Below, piece after piece: positions 16,081 through 64,000 of a DNA stretch of 64,000 nt (positions within the stretch are counted from its first letter, which is position 1; every line of letters starts with the position of its first letter). The translations under genes and the position numbers were made by a program. This DNA comes from Macrostomum lignano (Eukaryota), in assembly GCA_002269645.1 (NCBI GenBank), contig NIVC01000004.1:124001-188000 (forward strand). The letters run 5' to 3'. The notes below the pieces were generated by a model. The model was not told the DNA's origin and made no database searches. It saw only the letters and a list, made by a program, of their open reading frames with translations.

Positions 16081-17227
16081 ATGGGGTGGAGCGTGAGCTA
16101 AGAGTATTATGAGCAGAGCCATGCCTATTTTTTTCTCTCTCTCCCTTTGTTATGTACTTGGCACTTTTGAAATTTTACTGGACTATTTTGACCCGCCTTT
16201 GGACTGTACAGTTTGTTTTGCTTAAATATATTGGTGCTAAAAATTAAGGTTAGTTGAATTTGCCCTGACAATAAGCAAACAAAGTAAGCAAAATTACTGA
16301 TGGAGGAATGAGATAATAAATACAATACAATGAAAGAATAGTTTAACAAACGAAGGTAGGCCTACTTAATTACTACTACAAAATAGTTATTTCTAATTCT
16401 AGTGCCATGATTCTAACTCTTGTGCAGACGTGGACTGAAGAGTTTCGTCCAGTGTTAAGATTTCCAATATTCTCTTGTGTATTCCATACCTTAAACTAAA
16501 TGTGGCACAGATGACAGATTGACAGAATATTACGGTTATAAAATTAATTTCGATTTTCGAAGGGCCTATGATAAAATGAAAAAAATATTACAAGGATTCT
16601 AGAATCTATAAGTCAAAATAGCGGTCGACGCTAAGTATACTTAGTAACCTAAAGTTTTTTTTACAATTCACATTTTGACAAGACACATTCAGACACGAAT
16701 TTTTTATTTTTATTATAACTTTCATAGAACTACTCCATAAGTCAAATTAACTTGTAGAGTATAACAATCCGTTCCGCTTCTCTTACTTAGCGAAGTAATA
16801 TCCTGGTACTATAATGAATATAATTGCTTGTTTAGATTATTTAATTTTTTTGTTCACACGCCACTCTCTGTTATTTACGCCCCAGCAATAAGATGGATGT
16901 TATCGAGACGAGACACCCATTATTATTATAATTATATCTCTTACAGAACCGTTTACAATAAATCATTTTGATTTATTTATATTATGTGATACGACTGCTA
17001 AAGCTTTGCCAACTCACTCATTCAAAGATCAGACTAAAGTGAAGCATAAGCCTGTATGTAGTCTTGTCCCATTTATGACCTTTTAATGTTTATTATAAAG
17101 GCTTCCACCTGAATTTCTGAGTAGGTACTGAACCCAAGTAGGTCTAAGTTCTATTGGAGTATTATTAGGCCCTACTATCTTAAAAACATTTCTCTTGGCT
17201 ATTGTACTCCTCAATTTAAAATTACAG

Positions 17228-20200: not shown

Positions 20201-22094
20201 CACTACCAAAATTTTCACTTCTAAATTTTTTTCAAAATTGAAATTCACTCTAAAAAATTTGAAGTTTTGGAAAATTGAAATTGAATTTTCGAAACATCTC
20301 TAAGCTTAATAAATTACAAGTGTATAAGCCCTTTCAACAGAGGTATTATACCCATTTGCATGTATATGTATTTGCTAGAGCAGCAGCCAGTAAGAAAGGG
20401 CAGCGCGCGTGCAGGTGCTGCGCCTGTGCGCGCGCTGCGCTTTAGAAAAATTTCAAAAGTGCGCCGGACACCATCCGCAGTTTTACAACTTTTTCCTATA
20501 GGGAATAGAAAAATTCAAACAAAAAATGAATTCATGTTTCGGGATACATTCCTTACTCTGACACCATATTCAGCTTTAATAATTTGTAAGTTGAAATTTT
20601 CTGTCCCAAAGGAAAAAAACATTAAGTATGTCAAAAGATGAATTCATTTGGCACCCCTTACAAACACATTTTGGAAGCAAATATTTCGAGAAATACAAAA
20701 GGCAATCGTGTGTCTAAGATGTCATTGCAAAGCTGAGACATTCGTCAAGAATTAATAAAAGTTTCAGAGCAAATGATTGAAGCATTGAGACGCAGCGATA
20801 AATCAAACTTTTTGTTAATCACCGATCTTCAACCAAGATCAACCAAAACTTCTGTAAATGACCTGCATTTGAAATCACTGGCGTCTGCCCTTCTAAAATT
20901 CTATTTAAATCCGTCTGAGCTAATTGATTAAAAGGCCTTCCCCTTTCTGTTGCCACCCAGTTGCTATGCAGTGCATCGAGTCGGCCTATGGACTAGGCGA
21001 ATCGAGGAACGGTGCCGAGCAGCAGCAGCCGCCTCGCCCAAGTCTGGCGGCCGTCTACGCTGCCGGCTGCCAGGCCCTGGCGTCGGAGATTCACCAGACA
21101 GCCGAGCGTCTCAAAGCCGAGGGCAACGCGCTGATGTCTGGCAACAGGCCGTTGGAGGCGGTGGCCGCCTATACGCGCGCCATCGAGACGGCGCCGGGCA
21201 GTGCTGTCTACCACTGCAACCGGGCTGCCGCCTATTCGAAACTCGGCGATCACGAGGCCGCCATCCGTGACTGCGAGCTGGCGCTGGCTGCCGACCCCGG
21301 CTACGCCAAGGCCTACGGCAGGCTGGGCTTCGCGTACGCCGCGACCGGCCGGCACGCCAGAGCGGCCGAGTATTATGGCCGGGCCCTGCAGCTGGAGCCC
21401 AACTGCGTAGGCTATCGCCAGAATCTGGACACCGCCAGGGCTGCCGCTGCCCGGGCTGACGTGAGTAACAAGGCTGCTCCTTGCTCCCTCATCCTCACCA
21501 GCATCTACTGACATCCTCATCAGTATCTAGTGACATCCTCACCAGTATCTACTGACATCCTCACCAGTATCTAGTACATCCTTACCAGTATCTACTGACA
21601 TCCTCATCAGTATCTACTGACATCCTCACCAGTATCTACTGACATCCTCACCAGTATCTACTGACATCCTCATCAGTATCTACTGACATCCTCACCAGTA
21701 TCTACTGACATCCTCACCGAAATTCCCGTGGCGTTTCCAGCCCACAGCCCAGCAGCGGCAGGCGCCTCAGCAGCAGCCGCAGCCGGACGGTCGGCCCCGC
21801 CTGCCGGTGGACTTCCAGATGATGATGAACCAACCGGATGCGCTGCGCCACGCCTCCCAGATGGTCACCAACATGGCCGGCCATCTGCCGCCGTCCTTGA
21901 ACCTCAGCCGGCTCAGCGCCGACGAGCTGGCCGGCATGGGCCGCGAGTTCGCCAGCTTCCTGGCCTCGCACAACCCCGCCCTGTCCGAGCAGCTCAACGC
22001 CTCCGTGTCCCGAGGCGGCGAAGGAAATGACGGCACCGGAGGCGGAGGCGGAAATGGAGAAAGGCAAAACCGACCACCTGACTATTTCTCTTGA
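17228..22094 (+). CDS. SGTA: small glutamine-rich TPR co-chaperone (SGTA/Sgt2)
   Basis: Exons 17228-17347 (KKDLPLSIIQFLESEL..ESIE), 20961-21460 (V|AMQCIESAYG, three TPRs ending KAYGRLG..YYGRALQLEP), 21741-22094 (Q/M-rich C-terminus, PPDYFS*); phases consistent; start probably A|TG across an intron. Confidence 0.92.
17450..17685. repeat. degenerate ~55-bp tandem repeat in SGTA intron
   Basis: CACCAAAGTTGT...TCTACAAATGATT recurs about four times. Confidence 0.65.
19490..19880. repeat. CT-rich low-complexity tract
   Basis: Near-pure pyrimidine plus strand; Phe/Ser/Leu ORFs are artefacts. Confidence 0.9.
19990..20303. mobile_element. possible small MITE
   Basis: TTAGAGATGTT (19990-20000) and AACATCTCTAA (20293-20303) are inverted; internal AAATTGAAATT repeats; no convincing TSD. 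Confidence 0.35.
21484..21718. repeat. 22-bp intronic minisatellite (CATCCTCACCAGTATCTACTGA)
   Basis: Direct tandem repetition filling SGTA intron. Confidence 0.95.
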
Positions 22095-22508: not shown

Positions 22509-23239
22509 GGCCCGCAGCTTACCCGTCCGGTGAATCCGGCCTGCTGTCATATCTGTAACTGCAGTTTTGCTATACACATATCTGTATGCCGGCCTTCTCA
22601 TGCTTGATGCATCATGTCTGCGCAGAAGCCTCGCAGCTAATATCCACTAATTTGCCCAGCAAGTTCCCCGCCGGTTGCCTTCTCCCACCTCATGTTTGAC
22701 TCCCCTCTGCTCCTACTAATTCTTGGGCGAACGTTTTTTTCCGAGAGACAGATCGCGCCTACTGGTTGCTATGCTGTTACTGTACTTTTGCTACCGTAAT
22801 GCTGTGATTATTATTCGCGAACTTAGTCTAGCGGCGTGTACTATGTTTGCTTCGGCCAAATTTATTATTATAAATGTTTTTATATAGTATTAGATTACAG
22901 AATCCGCACTCTCGATGCCTGACCGGGAAATTTTATACGCAGAAATAAAACATTGAATTTATTTTCCATTTGTTTCACTGCACTTCAATACATACATTCG
23001 TTAGATACTACTAGACCAGCAAGTAATATGAAGTTCTCATGGATTTATGGATAATGAGTTAGACGTCATTTAGGACGCATATTGGAAGAGGAATTTGCTC
23101 GTCAAGATTCAGCAATTATTCAAAGATTTTCAAGTCGTCTACCCTACTAAACTGGTGCATGCTTAGCCAATTGTCTGAGGTTGGGATCCAGTTAGTTAAA
23201 CATTTGCTCCGACCATTTAAACATTCTTTCTCTCCTCCG

Positions 23240-24062
23240 ACCCATTTCTGATCAGCTACTGACCCATTTCCAAACAGCTACTGACCCATTTCTAAATAGC
23301 TACTGACCCATTTCCAAACAACTACTGACCCATTTCCAAATAGCTACTAAACAATTTCTAAATAGCTACTGACCCATTTCCAAATAGCTACTGACCCATT
23401 TCCAAACAGCTACTGACCCATTTCCAAATAGCTACTGACCCATTTCTAAACAGCCACTGACCTGTTTCCTAATAGCTACTGACCCATTTCTAAACAGCTA
23501 CTGACCTGTTTCCTAATAGCTACTGACCCATTTCCAAATAGCTACTGACCCATTTCCAAACAACTACTGACCCATTTCCAACCAGCTACTGACCCATTTC
23601 CAAACAGCTACTGACCCATTTCCAAATAGTTACTGACTCATTTCCAAATAGCTACTGACCCATTTCTGAACAGCTACTGACCTGTTTCCAAATAGCTACT
23701 GACCCATTTCCAAATACCTACTGACCCATTTCCAAATACCTACTTACCCATTTCTGAAAAGCTACTGACCCATTTCCAAATACCTACTGATACATTTCCA
23801 AATAGCTATTGACCCATTTCTAAATAGCTACTGACACATTTCCAAACAGCTATTGACCCATTTCTAAATAGCTATTGACCCATTTCCAAACAGCTACTGA
23901 CCCATTTCTAAACAGCTACTGACCCATTTCCTAATAGCTACTGACCCATTTCCTAATAGCTACTGACCCATTTCCAGCCAGCTACTGACCCATTTCCAGC
24001 CAGCTACTGACCCATTTCCTAATAGCTACTGACCCATTTCCAGCCAGCTACTGACGCATTTC
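23240..24062. repeat. 22-bp minisatellite (AGCTACTGACCCATTTCCAAAC)
   Basis: Direct tandem repetition. Confidence 0.95.
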
Positions 24063-24769: not shown

Positions 24770-25770
24770 GAGGTTGTCACAATGAGTGTCAGGTTGTCAT
24801 AATGAGCTTGTCACAATGAATGTCAGGTTGTCCCAATGAGTGTCAGGTTGTCCCAATGAGTGTCAGGTTGCCACAATGAGTGTCAGGTTGTCACAATGAG
24901 TGTCAGGTTGTCCCAATGAGTGTCAGGTTGCCACAATGAGTGTCAGGTTGTCATAATGACCTTGTCACAATGAATGTCAGGTTGTCACAATGAGTGTTAG
25001 GTTGTCCCAATGAGTGTCAGATTGTCACAATGAGTGTCAGGTTGTCATAATGAGCTTGTCACAATGAATGTCAGGTTGTCACAATGATCAGTTTCAGGTT
25101 GTCACAATGAGTGTCAAGTTTTCACAATGAGTGTCAGGTTGTCCCAATGAGTGTCAGATTGTCACAATGAGTGTCAGGTTGTCATAATGAGCTTGTCACA
25201 ATGAATGTCAGGTTGTCACAATGATCAGTGTCAGGTTGTCACAATGAGTGTCAGGTTGTTACAGCGAGTGTCAGGTTGTCACAATGAGTGACAAGTTTTC
25301 ACAATGAGTGTCAGGTTGTCACAATGAGTGTCAGGCTGCCCCAATGAGTGTCAGGTTGTCACAATGAGTGTCAGGTTGTTACAGCGAGTGTCAGGTTGTC
25401 ACAATGAGTGTCAAGTTTTCACAATGAGTGTCAGGTTGTCACAATGAGTGTCAGGTTGTCACAATGAGTGTCAGGCTGCCCCAATGAGTGTCAGGTTGTC
25501 ACAATTAGCGTCCAGTTGTCACAATGATATTCGGGTTGTCACAATGAGTGTCAGGTTGCCAGAATGAGTGTCAGGTTGTCACAATGAGTGTCAGGTTGTC
25601 ACAATGATCAGTGTCAGGTTGTCACAATGAGTGTCAAGTGAGTGTCAGGTTGTCACAATGAGTGTCAGGTTGTCACAATGAGTGTCAAGTGAGTGTCAGG
25701 TTGTCACAATGAGTGTCAGGTTGTCACAATGAGTGTCAGGTTGTCACAATCAGTGTCAGGTTGTTACAAT
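24770..25770. repeat. 20-bp minisatellite (GTCACAATGAGTGTCAGGTT)
   Basis: Direct tandem repetition. Confidence 0.95.
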
Positions 25771-25821
25771 GGTTTGATGCGTTTGATTTTTTTCGAGCTA
25801 CGCGTGTTTTCGGGACTACAG

Positions 25822-26927: not shown

Positions 26928-29701
26928 CTCTGGGATTTCAAAAAAGAAAGAGCGGGCCAGCAATAACCCGGCTCCCGGTCCACTCCATTCTCTTTTCCAT
27001 GGCCGAACTCCAAGACTCAAATCGACTGCGAGAGCCGGCACAGCGGCAGAGGCGCTGGACAGCGGCGTCCGCCTTCTGTCTGAACTCGGCGCCAACGACG
27101 AGGACCTGGACGACGCCGGCATCGACACCTCCGCGACTGCCGCTATGGCCGCCGCTGACGAAGAGGACGAAGTTTCGAAGATGGTGGCGCCGTCGGCCGC
27201 GGCAGCTGTGCCCAAGCCGATCCGAGGCCACCTGATCGGCCGCCAGGGCACCTGGCAGCTGCACATCGACGCCGCAGCGCTTCGCTTCGTCCGTCAGCCG
27301 CCAGCGGCGTCTAAAGAATCAGCAAAGGATGACAATGAATCCTTCGTGTGCAGCTTTGACGACACAGTCGGTGTCGGCTTCATCAGCGATGGCGGCTGTC
27401 GGAGCCGCTACCTCTGCGCCTTCCGCTACGTCAGGCGGCCGGTCGCCGCGCCGGGCAGGCCGAGCGGGCCGCGCCAGCGCAGCCTCGTCTTGTTTCGCAT
27501 CGTGCAGCCGGCGGACCCGCCCGGCGTTGCCCTGGTCGGCCGGCTCTGCTCGCAGGCGGTTGCCCGATCGATGGGGCGCGAACCCGGGCCGCCTGGAAAA
27601 CGGCCGCTGCTGGTGAGCGGGCGGGGATTTCAATTTTTAAAGCAAACCCCCCCCCCCAAGCCTCGCACGATCTGGGCGCTCATGGCGCCCGTCTTTAGTC
27701 ATCCACGTCCAGAGCTCAGGCCCAGGGTGAGACGGGAGACCTGTACCTACCGGTAGTAATTACAACAATAACAAAATACACTGTTAGATAATCACAGCAA
27801 AGAACTGCCCAAGCTTCAAGCTTTGAGCCTCGAAACACAGACTGACTGAGCTTCAATTTCTTGCAGGGCAGGAGGCTTGACTGCTGTGCTTCGACTGCGC
27901 GTTCGAAGTCGACCATTTTCATTTCAAAATTTTGACCTTACATTAGAAATTTCATTAGAAATGACATTAAAAATGACAGTAGATGTGAGCTCAATGCAGG
28001 CTTTTACTGGGCCATTAACCAAGTCCTATCTCGCTTTCTTGTCTCATCTCGTCTCGTCCGCCCTCTGACCTGAAGGTGCTGCTGAACCCGCGCAGCGGCC
28101 AGGGCCGGGCGGACAAGCTGTTCAGGGAGACGGCCGAGCCGCTGCTGGAGGAGGCGGGGCTGGCGCACAGGCTGGTCCGCACCGAGTCCGCCGGCCACGC
28201 CACGCGGCTGCTGCGCGACTCGCCGGCCGAGGAGCTGCTGAGCTACTCCGGGCTCGTCATTGTCAGCGGCGACGGGCTGCTGTACGAAGCGCTGAACGGT
28301 CTGGCCGGCCGGCCGGACTGCCTCCAGCTGCTTCGCCGGCTGCCCTTCGGCGTCCTGCCGGCTGGCGGCGGCAACGCGGTGGCCGCGTCGTTGGCGCACG
28401 CCAACGGCGACTGCCTCGATCGCGAATTTGCAGTGACGGCCGCCTTCAACTTGGCCAAGGCGCGGCCTCGCCCGGTCGATCTGGCGCTTGTTGAAGCGGC
28501 CTCAGGCGCCAGCTACCTGGCCTGCCTGTCCGTTAACTACGGGTTGCTGGCCCAGGTGGACCTGGAGAGCGAGCGCTACCGCTTCCTAGGCGGGGCTCGG
28601 TTCGCCCTGGCATTCGGAATTCGACTGGCTGCGCCCGGCGGCCTGCGAGTATACAGAGCCAGGTGCGGGTTAGGGCCAGGTGCGGGTCAGGGCCAGGTGC
28701 GGGTCAGGGCCCGGTGCGGGTCAGGGCCAGGTGCGGGTCAGGGCCCGGTGCGGGTCAGGGCCAGGTGCGGGTCAGGGCCAGGTGCGGGTCAGGGCCAGGT
28801 GCGGGTCAGGGCCAGGTGCGGGTCAGGGCCAGGTGCGGGTCAGGGCCAGGTGCGGGTCAGGGTCAGGTGCGGGTCAGGGCCAGGTGCGGGTCAGGGCCAG
28901 GTGTTAAGCTACTTGACTTCTTCATTCATGAGCCAGGCGCACAGGTGCACAATTGTTCAGACGAGGTGTACATGCAGCTAGGTTAACTATTCAGTCTAGT
29001 GCTGGGTTCAATTGCAGCCAGGTACAAAGGTTGTGAGCTGTGCGCCACTACCTGCTGCCCGATTTGTGTGACAGATTTGCGTTACAAGTAGGCTCTGTTC
29101 GACCTCACTAGTGCGAATAGAAGCACTAAGCAGGCTCGGAGAAACTGAATCTTGGCTCGCACCAAACCACGCCTCTCGCAGACTCTCCTACTTGCCGGCA
29201 GAAGTTGCCGAAGCTAAAGACGCTGAAACCGCCGACGTCAGCAACGACAACGGCGACGACAACAACCGGAAGCCGCTGGCCTCGCTGAAGCGTCATTTGC
29301 CGGCCAGTCTGTCGGACCCGTTGCCTAGCAACGCAGGCTGGGTGACGGAGGAAGCGGACTACCTGCTGGTGCTGGCCAGCCTGCACTCGCACCTGGCTAC
29401 CGATAATTTCTACGCGCCCCCGTGCCGGCCGGACGACGGGCGCATCTACGTGACCTGGGTGGCGGCCGGGGTGTCCAAGGTCGACCTGCTGCGCATGTTC
29501 CTCAGTGTCGGCGACGGCGGCCACTTTCGAGCGCCGGCGTTCCGCTGCGCGGCGGCCCGCGCCTTCCGCCTGGAGCCGCTGGACGACGGCGGGCCGGTGT
29601 GCATCGACGGCGAGACGGCGCCATGCGAGGCGATGCAGGTGGAGCTGCTACCTCGCCTCGGCTTGGCGCTGACGCCGGCGCGAATCGGGATAACGAATTG
29701 A
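26928..29701 (+). CDS. SPHK: sphingosine kinase
   Basis: Exons ~26928-27612, 28076-28662, 29182-29701; motifs RPLL|VLLNPRSGQG, SGDGLLYEALNGL, PAGGGN, VDLESERYRFLG, VYRAR|LSYLP, IDGE. Possible first exon 26603-26643 (ATG CGT..TCC AG|gtgagc) is phase compatible. Confidence 0.93.
28658..28905 (+). repeat. 17-bp repeat made of the SPHK splice donor (CAG|GTGCGGGTCAGGGC), 15 copies
   Basis: GT at 28663 then every 17 nt to 28901. Confidence 0.95.
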
Positions 29702-32412: not shown

Positions 32413-33663
32413 TCAGGGCAGCACGAATACCAGCAGCACGCAGCCGATCTGAATGATTGACCCGTGCCGCAGCACCGCCCCGTCCTCGCAACCACCGCCG
32501 CCGCCGCCGCCAAACAGTGCCACAGGCGAGCAAAGGCAGCGGCACCCGGCGCCGCCGCCGCTGCCGCCTCCCGACAGTCGGAACCGGTGCCCCGCAGAGT
32601 CTAGCGCCGCCAGCGTTGCGGCTGCAGCCGACTGGGACTGGCGCTGCGCCGATCCCGTCAACCCGCCGCCGCGCCGCCCGGCCGCGGACTTCGCCGCCCC
32701 TTTCTGGCCGTCCTTTGCCCCGCTAAAGCCGACGCCGGCCGCCCAGGTCCGCTTGGCAGAGGGAGCGAAGAGCTGGCCATCCACCACGGTGCCGTGCTGG
32801 CTGTAGTTGATGAGCTCGAACACCCGGCCAGTTGGGTCGTAGTGGATCGTGGCGTGGCAGGAGGCGGCGGCGTACACGCAGTCGGAGCCCCACTGCTCAG
32901 CCAGGGCGATGTCGTTGCCGGCCAGCAGCCCGACAGTCGCCCCGGTGCGGGTCAGGGCGACCGGCGGCCCGCCGGCGGCCGGTGCGGCGCAGTGCAGGAT
33001 GGCCAGCGGTGGCGCCTCTGACAATTCCAAAGCCGATGCCAGTGGCTCCGCCGTGCGCGCAGGCGGCGGCGTGGCTTCTCGCTCGCCGGAGGACGACTCG
33101 GACAGGAAGCTATCAGCTGCGGCGGCTCGGCGCTTGCTCCGCTTCTGTCGCCTTTTGCCGCTGTACAGATCTTTGACCACCTGCGGCACTGGGGGCTGCG
33201 ACTGGGCCGCACCGCCCGGACGGTCCAACCGCCACGCTGGCAGGAAGCCGTCAATGCCGGCCGCTTTGGCCACAGCAGCGGCAGCGGCGCCAGCGCCTGT
33301 CGGTGGAGCTTCGTCTGGCGGCGCGGCGGCGGCGGCCTTTGTCAGCGCCATTGCCAGCTCGCAACGCAGCGCTACTCGGCGCCGCTTCTGGCGCTTCTCC
33401 TTGACGCCGCCTGAACCGGAAGCGGCCTCCGCATCGGCCGGCGGATGCGCCGGACACCGGAAGTCAAGACCGGAAGGCGGCGGCCGTTCGAGTCCAAGGC
33501 AGGCCAGGTGCTGGGCGGCCGGGCACAGGTCGCACTGGATGAGGGCGCCGGTTGCGCAGCCGTCGCCGCACATTTTGCATTGGCGCAGCGGCAGCGCCGG
33601 CAGCTTCCACTTGGGGCGGCCAGCCTGCGGCTGCTGCTCCGCTTGCTGCTGCAGTTGCGGCTG
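32413..33663 (-). CDS. PHF12: PHF12-like PHD finger + FHA domain, single terminal exon lacking a start codon
   Basis: CKMCGDGC..LIQCDLCP..HLACL..FRCPAH (PHD2 of PHF12), HATIHYD..FELINYSQHGTVVDG (FHA), LRHGSIIQIGCVLLVF*; phase-0 acceptor at 33664. Confidence 0.82.
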   Translation of the reverse strand, partial: QPQLQQQAEQQPQAGRPKWKLPALPLRQCKMCGDGCATGALIQCDLCPAAQHLACLGLERPPPSGLDFRCPAHPPADAEAASGSGGVKEKRQKRRRVALRCELAMALTKAAAAAPPDEAPPTGAGAAAAAVAKAAGIDGFLPAWRLDRPGGAAQSQPPVPQVVKDLYSGKRRQKRSKRRAAAADSFLSESSSGEREATPPPARTAEPLASALELSEAPPLAILHCAAPAAGGPPVALTRTGATVGLLAGNDIALAEQWGSDCVYAAASCHATIHYDPTGRVFELINYSQHGTVVDGQLFAPSAKRTWAAGVGFSGAKDGQKGAAKSAAGRRGGGLTGSAQRQSQSAAAATLAALDSAGHRFRLSGGGSGGGAGCRCLCSPVALFGGGGGGGCEDGAVLRHGSIIQIGCVLLVFVLP

Positions 33664-34263: not shown

Positions 34264-37200
34264 TCACTTGGCGCTGGCGGGAACCTTGGGCAGCCCGAAC
34301 TCATCCAGCTGCTGGTCTGAGGACTGCAATGCGAAGGAAGGATTGTAACGAATGGTTCCAATGCGAGCATCTAGAACTTTGGTAGGCACATAGATTGCGA
34401 GGTGAATATGCAGGTAGGCAGAGATTGGAAGGTGAATTTGCAGGTAGGCAGGTAGATTGGAAGGTGAGTATGCAGGTAGACAGGTAGATTGGAAGGTGAA
34501 TTTGCAGGTAGACAGGTAGATTGGAAGGTGAGTATGCAGGTAGACAGGTAGATTGGAAGGTGAATATGCAGGTAGGCAGAGATTGGAAGGTGAATATGCA
34601 GGTAGACAGGTAGATTGGAAGGTGAGTATGCAGGTAGACAGGTAGATTGGAAGGTGAAAATGCAGGTAGGCAGAGATTGGAAGGTGAATATGCAGGTAGA
34701 CAGGTAGATTGGAAGGTGAGTATGCAGGTAGACAGGTAGATTGGAAGGTGAGTATGCAGGTAGACAGGTAGATTGGAAGGTGAGTATGCAGGTAGACAGG
34801 TAGATTGGAAGGTGAGTATGCAGGTAGACAGGTAGATTGGAAGGTGAATTTGCAGGTAGACAGGTAGATTGGAAGGTGAGTATGCAGGTAGACAGGTAGA
34901 TTGGAAGGTGAATATGCAGGTAGGCAGAGATTGGAAGGTGAATATACAGGTAGACAGGTAGATTGGAAGGTGAGTATGCAGGTAGACAGGTAGATTGGAA
35001 GGTGAGTATGCAGGTAGACAGGTAGATTGGAAGGTGAGTATGCAGGTAGACAGGTAGATTGGAAGGTGAATTTGCAGGTAGACAGGTAGATTGGAAGGTG
35101 AATTTGCAGGTAGACAGGTAGATTGGAAGGTGAATTTGCAGGTAGACAGGTAGATTGGAAGGTGAATATGCAGGTAGGCAGAGATTGGAAGGTGAATATG
35201 CAGGTAGACAGGTAGATTGGAAGGTGAGTATGCAGGTAGACAGGTAGATTGGAAGGTGAAAATGCAGGTAGACAGGTAGATTGGAAGGTGAATATGCAGG
35301 TAGACAGGTAGATTGGAAGGTGAATATGCACATTTAAGTACTCTAGACAAGCAGATATGCAGGTTGGAAGGCAACTCACAGCGGGCGCCGATGCGGGCGC
35401 GCTGTCAGCGCCGGGCACTCGGCTCGGCACGCCAGGCGCACTGAGCGCCTCGTCCAGGTAAGACTGCCCGCCGATGTCCTCGGCGCCGAGGGCGTCCAGC
35501 TCGGCCTCCAGATCGGACTCGTCCACATCGGGCATGCCGTAGCTGCGGCCCATGATCTCGTTGATTTCGTTGGACTGATCAACAAAGCTTTCGAGATCGT
35601 CCTGAATTGTTGTCAGTGGTTAATGCCAATCGTGAGTCGGGAATCGGCCATAAACTGAATCAAAATCAGCCATAAACTGTCGGGAATCAGCTATAAACTG
35701 AGTCAGGAATCAGCCATAAACTGAATCAAAATCAACCATAAACTGAGCCAGAATCAGTCATAAACTGAGTCAGGAATCAGTCATAAACTGAGTCAGGAAT
35801 CAGTCATAAACTGAGTCAGGAGTCAGTCATAAACTGAGTCAGGAATCAGTCATAAACTGAGTCAGGAATCAGTCATAAACTGAGTCAGGAGTCAGTCATA
35901 AACTGAGTCAGGAATCAGTCATAAACTGAGTCAGGAATCAGTCATAAACTGAGTCAGGAGTCAGTCATAAACTGAGTCGGGAATCGGCCATAAACTGAGT
36001 CGGAATCAGCCATAAACTGAGCCAAAATCAGCCATAAACTGAGCCAGAATCAGCCATAAACTGAGCCAGAATCAGCCATAAACTGAGCCAGAAAATCAGC
36101 CATAAACTGAGCCAGAATCAGCAATAAACTGAGCTGGCAACCAGCCATAAACTGAGCCAGAATCAGCCATGAACTGAGCCAGAATCAGCCATAAACTGAG
36201 CCAGAATCAGCCATAAAATGAGCCAGAATCAGCCATAAACTGAGCCAGAATCAGCCATAAAATGAGCCAGAATCAGCCATATACTGAGCCAGAATCAGCC
36301 ATATACTGAGCCAGAATCAGCCATATACTGAGCCAGAATCAGCCATAAGCTTAGGTCTTTGGCTATGCTACCTGCAGGTCCTCAATTTTGTCCAAGTTGA
36401 CTCCGCGGTAGCTCTTCTTGAACTCCTTGACCCCGCCTCGCATAGCTTCCACTGTGGTTTTTGTATCCTTGACTGTCTGTATAGCGAAATTAGTCTGCTC
36501 CAAGTTGAAGCCCTGCTGCATCAGCTGCTCCCGCTGCTGCTCATAGCTTCGTTTCTGTTTGAGCACTCGCAGCGCCTTCTGCTTAACAAGATTCTTGGAC
36601 GGGCCGTCGCGCATTTTGGCCATCTGTTCGCGATAGCCAGAGAGCTCCTGATCCAGCTTGGCGATCTTCTTCTCTATGGACTCGCCCCGGCTGTCAATCT
36701 GGGTAAAAAAATTTAAAAAAATGGTTTAAGTACAAGATCATAGAAAGGGATAAATAGCTTTATTAATCTAATATATATAGCTTTTCTTAGCTATAGGCCT
36801 ATTATATAAAGAAGCCATATTACATGTTATAACTTTAATAATTTTTTTGTACAAAGCTATTATTAGTAATAAATATGCTAAAATCCATAGTCAGGATCAT
36901 GGCACGCCTACGCCAAAACTAGTGATGGATCCGAATATTTGGATTTGGAATCCGAATTCAAAAAAATGTGTCACTTTTTTAGAAATACAAATGTTTCAGA
37001 TTTGAAGTTTTTTCCAAATGTGCTTCCAAATATGAAAAAATCAAGAAACCTAAACAAATTCAGGTTTGTAAAAGAAATAAAACTTTTGAAATAAGAAAGT
37101 ATATTAAAAAAAAACAAAAACACAAGAATCAGTAATTTCCATTTGAAAAATACCAGTAAAACATATTTGAATCTGTTTCATAAAAAATGCAATGTTAACA

Positions 37201-41183: not shown

Positions 41184-42122
41184 ATGTATCAAACCCAAAA
41201 GCAACTCAAGGCGCTGCTATATTGCCTGCTGCTGATGGCGCTCCCTGCCTCGGCCACGATCGATGCTGTGCATTCCGATCGGCAGATGGAGGTCTTCACT
41301 CAAGTGTCGCTTTCTGGCGCCCTATCGAGCTGCCGCCGCCTGCTGCTTATGCGCGTGCGGAGCCAGCAGGACTGCCTCATGCAGTGGATGAGGCTGCAGC
41401 AGATGGGAGCTCAGCCCACCTTTATCCACTACACACCTTCGACTGACTCGAGAGGCTGCGAGATCTCCGTCTGGTGCGACCAGCTGCTGTTGAACGAGTC
41501 GGAGACGCGCACCGCTCTGCTGCCGGCGTCTCAAAGTCCGCCGAGACTCGTGCTGTTCGCGGTCAAGTCCGGTAGCCAAGTCAACGTCCTGGACTCGTTC
41601 CTCACGCCCGTCGACTGCAACCGGTCTCTCCTCGTGTCGCCGATCGTCGGACCGCCTCCGCTCGACTTCTGGCGCTCGTGTTGGCTCGACCGACTTCCGG
41701 ATCTCGTGAGACTCGTGTCCGGCAACACGATCTCGGTCGAGCTGCTCAAGAACGGCGTCACGGCGCTGAAGATCTCGTTCGACGCCAGGTTCTCAGGACT
41801 GAATTCGACGAACTGGTTCAGCAAGGACAGGCTGGTCGCCAGCGAGCCGGACTTGGGTCTGGAAAACCAGACATTCAACTACTTCTCCGTTGCTGGTCAC
41901 GTGGATCCCGACGGGCTTAGTCGGTCATTCTTCATAAATATGGCTTACGGCGGCTGCTCAGGTGATGCTGGAGTTTTTGTTGTTACGTAAAAGCTCGACA
42001 TTTGTTCGTGGGCTAAAGCAGGCAGTGGCACGGCTCAGCCGAAAATTCTCTACAATTTGAAGGCCGGTCTTTGGGAGAACAATGCGAATCTGGCAGATCA
42101 CATGCTGATTACTGTTGCCTGA
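41184..42122 (+). pseudogene. secreted protein paralog A with in-frame TAA at 41988-41990
   Basis: Signal-like N-terminus; core nearly identical to paralogs B/C; homology continues in frame for 43 codons after the stop (KLDICSW..LYNLKAGLW..LADHMLITVA*). Confidence 0.75.
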
Positions 42123-42759
42123 ACTCGCTGTAAAAAGCGCCGACATAACAACGGAATGCAACCAATGTTTTGATTTTAATGTCCCATTTTTTCAGGTTGA
42201 ATAGGGGAAATCTTGGATAAAATAGCTTGCTCTTGTTTTTGCGTACTACAATTCTCTGATTAGGAAGGTTTTAGTCATCACAACCCTCTATGATAGTATT
42301 TCAGAATCACTAGTATTGAGAGAAAAATAAACAAGACCGGACTCTGAGACAATTAGCTTTCTTGTTGTCCGGAATCTCAAATGACTTTTTTCAATGGTTT
42401 TCATTTCTTTCAGATAGAATTGACAATGGCCATGATTTCAATCTAATTCATCGTTCGAGCTCCAAGGCCATTAAGTAAGGCCAGTTTCGGGTTATCACGC
42501 TGTGATTTTAAGGCCAAATTGATGAAGCCTCTGTTGCTTGGCTTCACATCCGCAGAGCCTTGTCTTGGATGTACTTTTGAAATCTTAGAAAGATTGTTCA
42601 AATCAGTTTCAAAATGGGTCTGAATCAATTGCACATTGGTTGGAGAAATCCGTGACCACGGACTACTTAAGTATCGATAAGTAGATATAAAGGGCGGTGA
42701 GCCGCGCTTAACTGCTGCGGCGGCCAACAGCGGTAGGACCAAGCGAGGGCAGCGGAGTC

Positions 42760-43080
42760 TACCTCGGCGGTCTGGTTCCCAGCGCCCGCGAGGATTTGCG
42801 GCGTCGCCGAGGGCTTGCCTGGGCTGCCTTTTGTTCTGTGAGAGCAGTCCTGCAGTCCGAGGCCTTACCTGACCGCCAGAGGACGGCGTTGTTCCAGGCG
42901 GTGATCGAGACCGTCCTGCTGTACAACTGACTGCTGTACTGATGCTGACAAAGTCGCTCGAGCAACAAGTTGACGCGGCGCAAGCTGGCCTGCTGCGCGC
43001 CGCCTTCAAGATCGGCCACGAGCGAGTGGCCAACGCGGCTTTTCATCACCGCGCCGGCCTGGTCCGTCAAAGCGACCTGT
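42760..43080 (+). mobile_element. decayed non-LTR retrotransposon (LINE) RT 3' fragment
   Basis: YLGGLVPSAREDLRRRRGLAWAAF..LFQAVIETVLLYN* then LTKSLEQQVDAAQAGLLRAAFKI: RT C-terminal/thumb region with stops. Confidence 0.8.
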
Positions 43081-44340
43081 TGCGCCGTCGGTGACTCCTG
43101 CCCGGTCCTTATTGACTTAACCCGAAGAGCAACCAGCATCACAGAGGCCACTTGCGAGTCATCAATGATTCGTTTGATCAAACACCTCTGCGGCAGTTCA
43201 AGCACAGCTGTGTTGACATTCCATGAAGCTACTACTGATTAACATCTACTTATACGCGGCTTTTTAGCCATCCCATAAGGTGTGCCTTTGTATAATTTAG
43301 CCAGTTAACAAGTGTACCAATAAATCCTCTTTTGAGGGATTTTCAATCTCTTTAGAGAAATTCTGCAGAGTAAATAGAAAGGGACCCCGTAGTTTTTGCT
43401 TTTCAAAAACAAGGAAACTTAGAATTATTTATATTCAACAACAATTGCATGGACTAAAGAGGAAACTGCAGATAACGGAAAAGCGAGCCAAATAGGATCA
43501 CAAAATTGATAAAATATCGCTACTTGTTTAAAAAAACTAACGATTTGCGAGACCAGATTACAAGACAGTTAATGTATATATAAGAGTTGTACACTGACAG
43601 CAGGATAGAACTTCAACAGTACATGTTGACAAGAGAATCCTAAGAACCGAGCACTCAACACTTGGCGGCTAACCTCGCATTTGCAATTGTAGCTGGACAG
43701 CAAAATTCAAAGGGGGTGTAGCACAGTCTAGTCTTTGCTAGTATATTTATTATCAATTTACTAGAAGGCGGGGTTGGTACATGCTTTAACAGGGGGGGGG
43801 GGGGGGGGTTTGTACGTGCGCATGATTTGCTATGTACTCGTATGTTATAACCAATCAGAATGGATGAGGCGAGAAAAGGTGGCGTGAGGCGCAAAGGCGG
43901 GGCAGGTGCAGTAGGCAAATCACGAGTAATAGTACAGACAGACGTACAATCAAGTAAACAAACCTTTACTCTTCAAACCAGTGTACGAGCGTATGTCTAC
44001 AGTTGAGTTCGCAGCGCAGTGACTGAGACCAACGGTCCAAGAGCTAGAACTCTAACACTGCTCATGGGCGCTAAAATCTTCGAACTCACTGCAAAAGTTG
44101 GTTAAAGGGACGCCAAAGCAAATTTAAAAGGTTCGAACAAAAATAATCGAAAATTTAAACAGGGTGACAAAATGGTGTTAGGAGTTTGCATGGGGTAAAT
44201 ATGCAAGCTCCGCAGCATTTGGTCTCAAGGAAACACGAATGGAAATGTTTAGATTTTAGAATTTTTGAGGATTTTCTGAAAAGATGACAAACAAAACTTT
44301 TTGAGTTTAAAGTACATCAGGAACAGTTACCGCAGCAAAT

Positions 44341-45343
44341 TCAGGCCACATAGACGAGCATGTAGTCAGCCAGCTGCACGTAGTCCTTCCAAAGACCGGC
44401 CTGCAAGTTGTACAGAATTCTGGGCAGAGCCGTGGTGCTGTTGCCGGTCAAGGCCCACGCACAAACATCATACTGGTCCATTACAGCCAGGACTCCAATG
44501 TCACCTGGGCAGCCACTGTACTCCATGTTTATGAAGAATGACCGACTAAGCCCGTCGGGATCCACGTGACCAGCAACGGAGAAGAAGTTGTATGTCTTGT
44601 TTTCCAGACCCAAGTCCGGCTCACTGGCGACCAGTCTGTTCTTGCTGAACCAGTTCGTCGCAGTCAGTCCTGAGAACCTGGCGTCGAACGAGATCTTCAG
44701 CGCCGTGACGCCGTTCTTGAGCAGCTCGACTGAGATCGTGTTGCCGGACACGAGTCTCACGAGATCCGGAAGTCGGTCGAGCCAACACGAGCGCCAGAAG
44801 TCGAGCGGAGGCGGTCCGACGATCGGCGACACGAGGAGAGACCGGTTGCAGTCGACGGGCGTGAGGAACGAGTCCAGGACGTTGACTTGGCTACCGGACT
44901 TGACCGCGAACAGCACGAGTCTCGGCGGACTTTGAGACGCCGGCAGCAGAGCGGTGCGCGTCTCCGACTCGTTCAACAGCAGCTGGTCGCACCAGACGGA
45001 GATCTCGCAGCCTCTCGAGTCAGTCGAAGGTGTGTAGTGGATGAAGGTGGGCTGAGCTCCCATCTGCTGCAGCCTCATCCACTGCATGAGGCAGTCCTGC
45101 TGGCTCCGCACGCGCATAAGCAGCAGGCGGCGGCAGCTCGATAGGGCGCCAGAAAGCGACATCTGTGTGAAGACCTCCGTCTGCTGATGGGACTTCACAG
45201 CATCGGCCTTTGCCGCGGTGGCTAGGAGCGCAATCAGCAGCTGGGCGCAGAGAAGATCTGCAAGCTTGCTAAGGAGGCAGCGTGCATTGCGTGAGATCGT
45301 TATCAAGTTACAAAAGTATTCAGACACGAGAAACTCACCTCAT
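44341..45343 (-). CDS. secreted protein paralog B (uncharacterised, Cys-containing)
   Basis: join(45343-45339 ATGAG, 45268-44341) over a 70-nt GT-AG phase-2 intron gives MSKLADLLCAQLLIALLATAAKA signal peptide; open ORF to TGA. Confidence 0.85.
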
Positions 45344-46479
45344 ATTGGCTTGGATATCCGCTGACTTTCTCACAGAGCGTCAAGCCGAAGAAAGGTTTTA
45401 TCCCCTATAAAGGGCGTGAAAGTGGAGCTAAAGAGCTGCTTAAGCATTTTGCTTAGAATCCCAATTAGAAAATCGTCACCTGAGAAAATCGCCCAGACAT
45501 GAGGCGAGATGATGAATTCAACCATTCTCGATTTTATCCCGCGCGTTTCCCACGCCAGAAAGCTTTTGTCTCTAAGAGAGAAATTAACTTTGCAATTTAC
45601 AATAGGGCTCTGCATTTTATGCTTGATTGATGCATGAATCAGTCATCAGTTAACGGGCCTGTTGCAAGATTACTTTCTCATTTGATTGACAGGTTGGTCG
45701 ACTAGGAAAAAGAAGAATTCCTGGTGGCCTTAGGGGTTTTAGCAAGAAACAAAGAGAATGGATGTCAGCAGCATTCATGTCCATTATTATGCTCTACTAC
45801 GCTCGTAGTCCAGCGATACGAGCTACTCCAGGAAGCCGAACCTGGCGCATCGATTTTCTTTAAATTTCCGGAAGATTTCTTTATAGACTATGCCTTTCTC
45901 TTTGTGTCCGTCTACACGCACTGCAGAAAGTGCAGTAACTGAGGCTGCATAGCAGCATAGGGGCAACCATTGTTTCCAGAAAATCTTTTTTCAGATCAAT
46001 CTAAGCGCTATCATTTTGGGTCGGAAATCCCAGTCTGTAGATGCTGTCGAATCGCTCATGAGCTGATTGAGTCCTTGCTCAGCTTATCATTTGCAAGCAA
46101 AATCTTAAAGTGAAAACTCTTTTAGTCGGTAAAACTTGGCATCTCGGACGCCTGAAGCAAATACCTGTCAGTCTCCTAAAGCTAAGAGTAACCGTGAGTT
46201 TCAAGGAAATTTGAGGAAATCAGACCTTGAAGCTTGTGAAATATCTGCTTGAAGTACATGTAACTCCAACTAAACGAGAGTGAGTAACTAGCAATCTTCG
46301 ACTCCTGTTTGGGGAGGCAACAAAGGAAGGAAAAGAAAGTTTTGAATAAACTACGCGTAAGGTTTTTACTTTGTACAGTGTCACTATTGTTCATTTCTTG
46401 AGCAAAATGATGTTTAAAGTAAAAAAGTATCCGCTCCTAAAGCCAGCTGTCTAGCCTACGAGCGTATGATAACAGATCA

Positions 46480-47380
46480 TCAGTGAGTTTTCGCTCTAGG
46501 CATCTGAGCAGCCCCCATGAGTGACAGCATTTCAGAATCACCCCCGCGATCCTTGACCTTCTCAGCAACTCCCCCGCGATCCTTGACCTTCTCAGCAACT
46601 CCCCCATGAGCCTTGACCTCTCCACAACTCCCCCATGAGTAACAGCATTTCAGAATCACCCCCGCGATCCTTGACCTTCTCAGCAACTCCCCCGCGATCC
46701 TTGACCTTCTCAGCAACTCCCCCATGAGCCTTGACCTCTCCACAACTCCCCCATGAGTAACAGCATTTCAGAATCACCCCCGCGATCCTTGACCTTCACA
46801 GCAACTCCCCCGCGATCCTTGACCTTCTCAGCAGCTCTCCCGCGATCCTTGACCTTCTCAGCAACTCCCCGCGATCCTTGACCTTCTCAGCAGCTCTCCC
46901 GCGATCCTTGACCTTCTCAGCAACTCCCCCATGAGTAACAGCATTTCAGAATCACCCCCGCGATCCTTGACCTTCACAGCAACTCCCCCGCGATCCTTGA
47001 CCTTCTCAGCAACCCCCCCCCGCGATCCTTGACCTTCTCAGCAGCTCTCCCGCGATCCTTGACCTTCTCAGCAACTCCCCCATGAGTAACAGCATTTCAG
47101 AATCACCCCCGCGATCCTTGACCTTCTCAGCAACTCCCCCGCGATCCTTGACCTTCTCAGCAACTCCCCCGCGATCCTTGACCTTCTCAGCAACTCCCCA
47201 TGAGCCTTGACCTTCTCAGCAACTCCCCCATGAACCTTGACATCTCAGCAATTCCCCCATGAACCTTGACATCTCAGCAATTCCCCCATGAACCTTGACA
47301 TCTCAGCAACTCCCTCATGAACCTTGACATCTCAGCAACTCCCTCATGAACCTTGACATCTCAGCAATTCCCTCCAAAAT
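46480..47380. repeat. 28-30-bp compound minisatellite (CCCCGCGATCCTTGACCTTCTCAGCAACT)
   Basis: Tandem units of two or three related types. Confidence 0.93.
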
Positions 47381-47999
47381 GCACAGCATTTCAGCAATTC
47401 CCCGTGCAAGCCCGCCTTAACTCTGCACTTTTACTGGCCACAGCTCGTATCTGAGTTCGTGAGCTCTGCGGTGAAAATCAGCCGAGGAGGAGCAAGAACT
47501 CAGGAACTGCTCCTAGGCTACTGAAATTTCAAATCTTATTTCGAATCTTATTGGTCAACTGCAGGAAGGCCACATTATCCGTGCCGCGCTGCACTGGCCA
47601 CAGCCGGCGCAGGAAGTGCTGTCTCTGACGCTACAGGCGCCCTACCGGTGAGGACAGGCGTTGTGTCGACTGCCTACTGACTGACGCTGGCGCCCCGGCC
47701 GATGTTCTCGCCCCGTGACCCTTAGCATGACAGCGTGTTCTGTTGTCGCAGTTGTTTTCAACGTTCACAGATTGTTTTATAAATAAAAAAATTGAGGCTG
47801 AAAGTTTTGAATGATGCTGATATTAATAGATCTTTTAGGGGATAAATATGCTGTTGTGTATTATATTTCACAATAACTTATCTCAAGATACACATTTAAA
47901 GTTTTAAAGAGTTTCACTTTAAAGGGGATTAGTTGACAGGAGACAACTGCGAGCTCGTCTTCGTCTGTCTCTATAGCGTAAAACTTATGCAAGGAAAAT

Positions 48000-49032
48000 T
48001 CAGGCCACATAGACGAGCATGTAGTCAGCCAGCTGCACGTAGTCCTTCCAAAGACCGGCCTGCAAGTTGTACAGAATTCTGGGCAGAGCCGTGGTGCTGT
48101 TGCCGGTCAAGGCCCACGCACAAAAATCATAATTGTCCATTACAGCCAGGACTCCAACATCAACAGGGCAGCCACCATACACCATGTTTATGAAGAATGA
48201 CCGACTAAGCCCGTCGGGATCCACGTGACCAGCAACGGAGAAGTAGTTGAAGTTCCTGGAGGCCAGACCCAAGACCGGCTCACTCCCGACCAGCCTGTCC
48301 TTGCTGAACCAGTTCGTCGCATTCAGTCCTGAGAACCTGGCGTCGAACGAGATCTTCAGCGCCGTGACGCCGTTCTTGAGCAGCTCAACCGAGATCGAGT
48401 TGCCGGACACGAGTCTCACGAGATCCGGAAGTCGGTCGAGCCAACACGAGCGCCAGAAGTCGAGCGGAGGCGGTCCGACGATCGGCGACACGAGGAGAGA
48501 CCGGTTGCAGTCGACGGGCGTGAGGAACGAGTCCAGGACGTTGACTTGGCTACCGGACTTGACCGCGAACAGCACGAGTCTCGGCGGACTTTGAGACGCC
48601 GGCAGCAGAGCGGTGCGCGTCTCCGACTCGTTCAACAGCAGCTGGTCGCACCAGACGGAGATCTCGCAGCGTCTCGAGTCAGTCGAGGGTGCGTAGTGGA
48701 CGAAGGCGGGGTCAGCTGCCTCCCTCTTCAGCTTCATCCACTGCTCCAGGCATTTCTGCAGACTTCGCGTGCGCGTCTGCAGCAGGCGGCGGCAGCTCGA
48801 GAGGGCGCCAGAGAGCGGCAACCGTCGGAAAACCCCCAGCTGACCGCCGCTTTCTGCGACATCGCCCCAGAGCATCAGCAGCAGCAGGGTGGAGATCAGC
48901 AGCAGGTTTCCATACGGCGGGCTGAAAGGCGGTTTTAGCATATAAAATTTCTTCCATAAATTATAGTCCAAGCAAAAAGCTCAAGCGCTTGAATAAGTTT
49001 CAAAGCTTAGCTTACGTTAATCTCGGCATCAT
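48000..49032 (-). CDS. secreted protein paralog C
   Basis: join(49032-49016, 48921-48000) over a 94-nt GT-AG phase-2 intron gives MMPRLTPPYGNLLLISTLLLLMLWG signal peptide; core and tail match paralog B. Confidence 0.85.
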
Positions 49033-51525: not shown

Positions 51526-60906
<9,381 letters not shown>

Positions 60907-63099: not shown

Positions 63100-64000
63100 G
63101 GATCAGAGGATACCCCAGCATCAAGGATCAGAGGACAACCTCAGACATCAGAGGACGCCCCAGCAGCAAGGATTAGAGGACAACCACAGACATCAGAGGA
63201 CGCCCCAGCATCAAAGATCAGAGGACAACCTCAGACATCAGAGGACGCCCCAGCATCAAGGATCAGAGGACAACCTCAGACATCAGAGGACGCCCCAGCA
63301 TCAAAGATCAGAGGACAACCACATACATCAGAGGACGCCCCAGCATCAAGGATCAGAGGACAACCACAGACATCAGAGGACACCCCAGCAGCATGGATCA
63401 GAGGACAAGCTCAGACATCAGAGGACGCCCCAGAAGCAAGGATCAGAGGACAACCACAGACATCAGAGGACGCCCCAGCATCAAGGATCAGAGGACAACC
63501 ACAGACATCAGAGGACGCCCCAGCAGCAAGGATCAGAGGACAACCACAGACATCAGAGGACGCCCCAGCATCAAGGATCAGAGGACAACCACAGACATCA
63601 GAGGACGCCCCAGCATCAAGGATCAGAGGACAACCACAGACATCAGAGGACGCCCCAGCATCAAGGATCAGAGGACAACCACATACATCAGAGGACGCCC
63701 CAGCATCAAGGATCAGAGGACAACCACAGACATCAGAGGACGCCCCAGCATCAAGGATCAGAGGACAACCACAGACATCAGAGGACGCCCCAGAAGCAAG
63801 GATCAGAGGACAACCACATACATCAGAGGACGCCCCAGCATCAAGGATCAGAGGACAACCACAGACATCAGAGGACACCCCAGCAGCATGGATCAGAGGA
63901 CAACCTCAGACATCAGAGGACGCCCCAGAAGCAAGGATCAGAGGACAACCACAGACATCAGAGGACGCCCCAGCATCAAGGATCAGAGGACAACCACAGA
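63100..64000. repeat. 45-bp minisatellite with internal ATCAGAGGAC duplication, runs off window
   Basis: CATCAGAGGACGCCCCAGCATCAAGGATCAGAGGACAACCACAGA units. Confidence 0.96.

Follow-up and report, generated by a model that had tools for sequence, protein, structure and literature searches.

Fibrinogen-related domain (FReD) proteins, among them ficolins, tachylectin-5, FIBCD1, angiopoietins, tenascin Fg and the snail FREPs, are secreted and encoded by multigene families, and the snail FREPs also diversify by conversion-like events. Sharing of sequence between neighbouring copies is likewise familiar from the concerted evolution of small tandem or inverted clusters, such as those of globins, opsins and MHC, which present mosaic tracts with identity at synonymous sites, limited to the alignable coding part and with a high GC content at third codon positions (GC3) where converted. 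Here we describe a cluster of three genes, paralogs A, B and C, found between positions 41184 and 49032 of a 64,000-nucleotide (nt) stretch of Macrostomum lignano DNA (contig NIVC01000004.1 of assembly GCA_002269645.1, positions 124,001 to 188,000; hereafter the window, whose own numbering is used throughout), in which these same features of concerted evolution were observed. The cluster probably consists of old paralogs of a divergent fibrinogen-like secreted family, whose mosaic of identity was built by repeated non-reciprocal gene conversion. Compared with usual concerted evolution there is nothing unusual about it, save that one participant carries a nonsense codon.

Like FReD proteins, the products of the cluster belong to a multigene family and are predicted to be secreted. 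In addition, relatives of the window proteins carry a YCDxxxxGGGW domain start, the structural model of one of them matches FReD structures, and a late Cys...Cys loop with an Asp-Gly-Trp-like motif is common to both groups. The window proteins differ from FReDs in having neither a PF00147 match nor the GGGW, and nothing in FReD sequences corresponds to their best-conserved half (NWFS..RL..S, FFIN..YGGC..D.GW). The intelectins or X-type lectins (human ITLN-1, Xenopus XEEL) were the top Foldseek matches of the modelled relative, P0092 (E 6e-6 to 1e-5), and share the design in which a fibrinogen-like part at the N-terminus precedes a C-terminal part specific to the family, but no sequence similarity accompanies this likeness and the template modelling (TM) score was only about 0.33. 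Bacterial proteins of the NCBIfam entry NF040941, for example those of Nannocystaceae, end in ~190 amino acids (aa) whose homology to the window domain is clear (profile E 1e-46 to 1e-53); they possess an intact YCD...GGGW subdomain and often myxobacterial Cys-rich repeats. In the window proteins this subdomain appears reduced to a degenerate remnant, ahead of which lies an N-terminal stretch of their own.

Coral USOMP-5 and egg-protein-like (EP-like) proteins are also secreted invertebrate proteins that start with a YC...GGW-type motif, and the first-pass annotation of this DNA had likened the C-terminal half of the three proteins to a domain of coral skeletal-matrix-type proteins. The comparison did not support this likeness. 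Beyond the shared motif, USOMP-5 and its Acropora digitifera EP-like relatives, whose sequences are given in the supplement of PMC4890752, showed no significant similarity to the family profile in hhalign (probability 0.13%, E 0.44), the motifs NWFS and FFIN were absent from the sequences of that supplement, and no coral protein occurred among the 30 relatives whose names were looked up.

Mosaic of identity along the three copies

Paralog A (41184..42122, + strand) is convergent with paralog B (ORF 44341-45327, - strand), and B and C (ORF 48000-48971, - strand) lie in tandem; a tblastn search found no fourth copy within the 64-kb window. The 864 nt encoding the mature proteins were aligned and contained 138 variable sites. 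All three copies differ along nt 0-44 of this alignment, and from nt 45 to 191 A equals B at every site bar one, C differing at 29. Then comes a block of 272 nt (nt 193-464) with zero differences among the three, synonymous sites included, so that synonymous divergence (dS) is 0; it corresponds to 41455..41726 (+) in A, 44740..45011 (-) in B and 48399..48670 (-) in C. Further downstream, 21 singletons, of which C has 12, B 6 and A 3, are scattered over nt 465-620, no difference is found at nt 621-674, the three copies differ again at nt 675-740, the NM-x-Y-x-GC-x-x-D-x-G stretch, and from nt 741 to ~4 nt past the stop codon B and C are exactly identical, A differing at 35 of 120 sites and having one codon fewer. 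The outlier copy changes along the gene: C stands apart at 29 of the 30 variable sites in the 5' part, and A at all 35 in the tail. Two pairwise tracts stand out, one of 430 nt with a single difference between A and B (alignment nt 43-472; 41305..41734, +, in A and 44732-45161 in B), the other a 3'-tail tract common to B (44337..44465, -) and C (about 47996-48124) that ends ~4 nt beyond the stop codon. The alignment thus bore out what had been noticed by the first-pass annotation, namely a near-identical core common to the three copies (now a block without any difference), an upstream segment in which A equals B and not C, a tail in which B equals C and not A, and differences in all three around NM-x-Y-x-GC-x-x-D. 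Its further statement that the signal peptides are unrelated held for C, and not for A and B, whose signal-peptide regions are partly alignable.

A longest invariant run of 272 nt was reached in 0 of 100,000 permutations of the 138 variable sites among the 864, and the same result was obtained for the longest concordant runs, of 26 polymorphic sites in the A-B comparison and 35 in B-C (P<1e-5 in each case), indicating that the patchwork of identity lies far beyond chance. Synonymous divergence told the same story: neither the core nor the B-C tail had any (dS 0), and it was 0.03 between A and B in the 5' part, 0.09-0.15 in nt 465-620, 0.23-0.27 for C against A or B in the 5' part, 0.79 for A against B or C in the tail, and above 1 in nt 0-44 (C against A or B) and in nt 675-740 (A against B or C), with an overall range of 0.2-1.9 beyond the tracts. 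Site patterns, dS and permutations together support the earlier claim that the abrupt switches reflect segmental gene conversion, and specify it as non-reciprocal. Segments are shared, not swapped, and the outlier changes, which requires non-reciprocal transfer; moreover, A is inverted relative to B, so that crossing over would trade sequence between them and not copy it. As to base composition, GC3 was 0.84 in the core, 0.80 in the B/C tail and 0.54 in the diverged tail of A (41937-42119, compared with 44344-44529 and 48003-48188), a pattern that would fit either GC-biased gene conversion or a decay of A.

Similarity between the loci stops at the borders of the coding sequence and the flanks are unrelated; conversion is confined to the coding sequence because only this part is still alignable. 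The unrelated flanks are also marked by a 30-nt minisatellite of ~28 copies in the B-C spacer (46512..47372, unstranded), outside the genes. A shared flank or a transposon was considered as the carrier of the duplication and discarded, the only 100% flank matches being overlaps of the flank windows compared and the minisatellite.

A minimal scenario of conversion would need four or more events that differ in age. The middle of the gene would have been homogenised first, and a recent tract would have rendered the 272-nt core identical in all three copies; to these are added an A-B tract across the 5' half and a B-C tract across the 3' tail. The stretches left unconverted would still show how far the copies had diverged earlier (dS about 0.8 to above 1). 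It weighs against any such detailed scenario that, with three sequences and no outgroup, neither the direction nor the number of the events can be resolved. The coarse two-block pattern, in which B matches A towards the 5' end and C towards the 3' end, would also be produced if B were a single chimeric gene, an A-like 5' half joined once to a C-like 3' half by recombination or duplication, with no ongoing conversion. We consider this account unlikely: a single junction cannot give a three-way core of dS=0 next to a divergence of C from A and B of about 0.25 upstream and 0.13-0.15 downstream, and it leaves unexplained both the divergent island at nt 675-740 between two B=C stretches and the mixed singletons at nt 465-620. 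The inversion of A with respect to B speaks against it too, a reciprocal crossover being expected to swap sequence and not to share it.

Macrostomum-type genomes are repeat-rich and partly duplicated (PMC5730564), which might lead to suspect that the identical blocks are an artefact of assembly or polishing, similar paralogs having been collapsed or homogenised in the consensus. This is very unlikely because the three copies lie on one contig in distinct and unrelated flanks and the borders of identity differ by pair. The identical stretches (57-430 nt) are also sharply bordered within clearly diverged sequence, and polishing may erase a few single-nucleotide polymorphisms but cannot create such a mosaic. 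Even less credit was given to the idea that the 272-nt identity is due to constraint on the DNA or RNA itself, whether from an antisense gene that overlaps the block or from RNA structure. In all three copies the core is indeed crossed by antisense ORFs of 85-130 aa, but these are expected in GC-rich codon-biased sequence, no Rfam match was obtained, and constraint of this kind cannot yield 0 differences at ~72 synonymous sites where other parts of the same genes have a dS of 0.2-0.8. The antisense ORFs over the core extend along 41322-41878, 44588-45144 and 48247-48938 and are most likely a by-product of GC-rich codon usage.

The patchwork probably represents ordinary interlocus gene conversion and not a special diversity-generating system. 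A literature search on Macrostomum and gene conversion returned nothing pertinent, and a conversion mosaic, being textbook concerted evolution, is of little weight alone.

The C-terminal domain family and its fold

The three proteins follow the same plan, a signal peptide, then a fast-evolving, Cys-containing N-terminal stretch of ~90 aa, then a C-terminal domain of ~190 aa. The conserved part of the latter, ~197 aa, is encoded at 44344..44934 (-) in B, 48003-48593 in C and 41532-42119 in A. From their hydrophobic N-termini and several N-x-S/T sites, A, B and C would be secreted. None of them had a Pfam match, a phmmer search of PDB sequences with B gave nothing relevant, and a word-indexed protein search with B gave no match. 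Since true relatives do exist, the blank of the latter search indicates that the method is too insensitive at about 35-40% identity. Indeed, phmmer against 1.84 billion representatives retrieved 278 relatives, 28 of them with E below 1e-10 and the best at 1e-52, all aligning to residues about 110-304; when only the domain was used in a local phmmer, per-domain E values went down to 1e-24. The ~90-aa N-terminal stretch had no phmmer match among the fetched relatives and thus seems lineage-specific.

The best relatives are multi-copy proteins of M. lignano itself, with 39% identity. The 30 relatives whose names were looked up came, besides M. lignano, from the amphioxus Branchiostoma, three gastropods (Batillaria, Pomacea, Nucella), two oysters (Ostrea, Crassostrea), the hemichordate Ptychodera, the crinoid Anneissia, the nemertean Tubulanus and the sponge Oscarella; further hits were to ocean metagenomes, and a separate profile search added a Nannocystaceae bacterium. 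All named relatives among those looked up were uncharacterised, hypothetical or automatically named (domain-containing, HMCN1, SVEP1-like), and none had a functional name of its own. The first-pass description of the paralogs as uncharacterised genes for secreted proteins stands, secretion being predicted from sequence. Up to nine copies of the domain were found per M. lignano gene model. In UniRef, the M. lignano models P0152, P0151 and P0001-P0003 bear names such as Peptidase_S9, MULTIHEME_CYTC, HZS_alpha, TSPc, DUF4091 and others; their content is 3-9 tandem copies of the domain, which such names misfit, so that they look like annotation noise or merged gene models.

In the family alignment we recognised the motifs NWFS..RL..S, N.FSI.GH, RRFFIN..Y.GCP.D.GWL.V.D....C.W and P.ILYS, together with two invariant cysteines. 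B and C keep both cysteines and the near-invariant W, N, F, G, R, F, D and G positions; the second Cys of A lies beyond a premature stop (see below). Partner modules in the relatives are PAN/Apple, EGF, SUEL lectin, ZP and fn3, and there are CUB-domain and SVEP1-like relatives, so named by their sources; all of these modules are extracellular. A literature search on the family motif name yielded nothing pertinent. The domain family is large, without a Pfam model, and present in marine or aquatic invertebrates and some myxobacteria. It comprises about 280 representative clusters, from sponge to amphioxus plus myxobacteria, and is strongly expanded in Macrostomum; a Pfam/InterPro model for it seems to be missing. 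In the bacterial members P0092 and P0166-P0170 (metagenome, Nannocystaceae) the domain is accompanied by myxobacterial cysteine-rich repeats (TIGR02232/DUF4215). The distribution across animals and bacteria suggests horizontal transfer, in one direction or the other.

It was the metagenomic and myxobacterial relatives that linked the family to a known fold. In a profile search, these proteins carried the NF040941 element, 'fibrinogen-like YCDxxxxGGGW', directly N-terminal of the domain, and PF00147 matches appeared in 8 of 60 relatives, covering only profile positions about 15-52. MAFFT aligned the 'ISVWCDQ' of the window proteins with the 'VYCD' of these relatives, GGGW being absent, which would mean that the window proteins lost GGGW and keep 'VWCDQ' as a remnant of YCDM. 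Structural models were then computed with AlphaFold2. Using the family alignment, the domain of B was modelled with a predicted local distance difference test (pLDDT) mostly above 90, confidence being low at the N-terminus. P0092, a YCD-bearing relative with a single-sequence E of 4e-7 in the phmmer scan, gave a model with a pLDDT of 84.5 and 101 Foldseek matches at E<=1e-3, with probability 1.0; the 50 of these 101 that were listed are intelectin-type lectins, ficolins, fibrinogen, angiopoietin/ANGPTL or tenascin Fg.

Several results weigh against this placement. No PF00147 match was obtained for A, B or C at E<=1, nor any NF040941 match for B. Foldseek matches of the B model were nearly all fibrinogen-like but weak (E 0.2-1, TM 0.25-0.34), and even for P0092 the TM reached only up to 0.49, with a root-mean-square deviation of 4-8 A. 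Searches of PDB sequences with the family profile gave no match to solved FReDs, and in hhalign against a typed-in fibrinogen gamma C-domain sequence the YCD/GGW motif alone was aligned, at a non-significant probability of 0.7%. With a TM of 0.44-0.49 and a deviation of 7-8 A for P0092, the C-terminal half may have been elaborated within the family, in the manner of intelectins. As the matches of the B model are weak and those of the P0092 model strong, the fibrinogen link of the window proteins holds only by transitivity. The placement of the fold is secure, in terms of the models, for the N-terminal half of the domain in the relatives; for the window proteins it would follow by homology. On these sequence comparisons and models, the family would represent a very divergent branch of the fibrinogen/intelectin fold group.

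What is modestly new here is that a widespread domain without a Pfam model is recognised as a divergent fibrinogen-like module, and it might qualify for formal description as a new branch of the fibrinogen/intelectin fold group, widespread in invertebrates and myxobacteria. The fold placement and the partner modules point to a lectin-like or other extracellular binding role, and the putative ligand site would lie near the disulfide-bracketed GC...C loop. Such a placement offers a testable hypothesis, lectin-like binding, for many 'hypothetical proteins', and appears compatible with the earlier suggestion of a recognition, defence or adhesive family.

The variable cysteine stretch and selection

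The variable stretch FFINM-x-Y-x-GC-x-x-D-x-G, up to the second Cys, is encoded at 44464..44529 (-) in B, 41937-42002 in A and 48123-48188 in C. A diversified cysteine loop had been proposed here by the first-pass annotation, which was examined in the sense of positive selection. Several observations could be read in this direction and would suit diversifying selection on a ligand-binding Cys loop from which conversion is actively excluded, as in immune lectin families: downstream of nt 620, B and C differ only at nt 682-738, inside the Cys-bracketed stretch, 7 of these 10 differences are non-synonymous, and the family is related to fibrinogen-like lectins. However, the ratio of non-synonymous to synonymous divergence (dN/dS) at nt 675-740 was 0.58 for B-C, 0.25 for A-B and 0.14 for A-C, all below 1 and calculated on just 10-21 differences, and the changed residues sit where the whole family varies, the family-conserved, fold-defining ones being kept. 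Two independent tract ends explain the island equally well, and we regard selection of this kind as improbable. A positively selected loop was not supported, with ratios of 0.14-0.58 on small counts and sites that vary family-wide. Without evidence of positive selection, the simplest reading of the sequences is that the stretch was left between the ends of two conversion tracts, an island that conversion would have skipped. The ~50 N-terminal codons behave differently, with a dN/dS of about 0.9-1.0 for C against A or B; given, in addition, the low model confidence at the N-terminus, this part evolves almost freely.

Highly improbable would be a germ-line patchwork system in which the paralogs, and a disabled copy acting as a reservoir, reshuffle segments round the putative ligand loop of a fibrinogen-like lectin. 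If true, flatworms would have their own equivalent of the diversification of snail FREPs or of the conversion of immune receptor genes from pseudogene templates.

Gene models and surroundings

Paralog A has an unbroken ORF from its ATG that is interrupted by an in-frame TAA at 41988-41990 (+), 44 codons ahead of the family stop, and continues in the same, homologous frame as far as the TGA at 42120-42122, exactly at the family stop position. As called up to the TAA, A covers 41184-41990 (+); the three called ORFs span 268-328 aa. The N-terminus of A is signal-peptide-like (MYQTQKQLKALLYCLLLMALPASA). At the position of the TAA, B and C encode Asp (GAC), as do 66% of family members. The tail of A that the first-pass annotation compared with those of B and C can thus be read only beyond this stop. 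A product cut at the TAA would end ahead of the second invariant cysteine and of the domain's last strands. Nevertheless, the tail shows a dS of 0.79 and a dN/dS of 0.31 against B and C, with no frameshift, indicating that it was functional for most of the history of A. Judged from the sequence, the nonsense change would be recent, polymorphic or an error, and A is probably a young pseudogene or null allele, still exchanging sequence with its neighbours. A non-standard reading of TAA was considered and dropped, since B, C and the frame of A all end at a TGA in the same position; nothing in the stop codons of the three genes points to a variant nuclear code.

In B, there is no in-frame ATG ahead of the hydrophobic N-terminus when the sequence is left unspliced, and a 70-nt intron is therefore required. 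The predicted model comprises exon 1 (ATGAG, 45339..45343, -), a phase 2 intron (45269..45338, -; AG/gtgagt ... ctccttag/C) and exon 2 (44341..45268, -), which supplies the greater part of the signal peptide and the mature protein down to its stop codon. The spliced N-terminus would read MSKLADLLCAQLLIALLATAAKA/DAV. C probably carries a matching 5' intron, here of 94 nt (48922..49015, -; AC/gtaagc ... cctttcag/C), whose predicted phase and position coincide with those of the B intron; it would separate exon 1 (ATGATGCCGAGATTAAC, from the ATG at 49032; 49016..49032, -) from the main exon (48000..48921, -), for which an ATG at 48941-48939 is the alternative unspliced start. Once spliced, the N-terminus of C would read MMPRLTPPYGNLLLISTLLLLMLWG. 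Neither the premature stop of A nor the 5' mini-introns of B and C had been recorded in the first-pass annotation, whose three-gene outline is amended accordingly. Annotators should be aware that A is interrupted and that the first exon of B, and probably that of C too, is tiny; within the identical core, reads cannot be mapped to one paralog or another.

The window is animal nuclear DNA with GC-rich coding parts and AT-rich spacers, and contains no tRNA genes and no Rfam matches. An AT-rich trough at 16001-20000 (GC 0.29-0.34) lies between GC-rich coding blocks (0.55-0.62). Beside the cluster, a netrin-type gene occupies 51526-60906 (-), with a Laminin_N exon (59779-60906), laminin-EGF exons (59259-59882 and 57355-58092), an NTR exon (51526-52113) and introns filled with minisatellites. 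Other exons encode RhoGAP (3006-3992, -), TPR of the SGTA-like type (20924-21511, +), DAGK_cat/sphingosine-kinase-like (28076-29701, +) and PHD-finger (32413-33573, -) domains; the kinase ORF runs into a 17-nt repeat, translated as GSGPGAGQGQVRVRARC units. About 27 separate minisatellite arrays, with units of 14-45 nt and up to 70 copies, were counted in the 64 kb, for instance at 69-1338, 4043-4847, 7119-7820, 23239-24062, 24771-25771, 34391-35330, 53622-54869 and 63102-64000, and many of them simulate long ORFs in more than one frame. The M. lignano genome is reported to consist to 15% of simple and tandem repeats (PMC5730564), a figure with which the tandem-repeat load of the window suggestively agrees.

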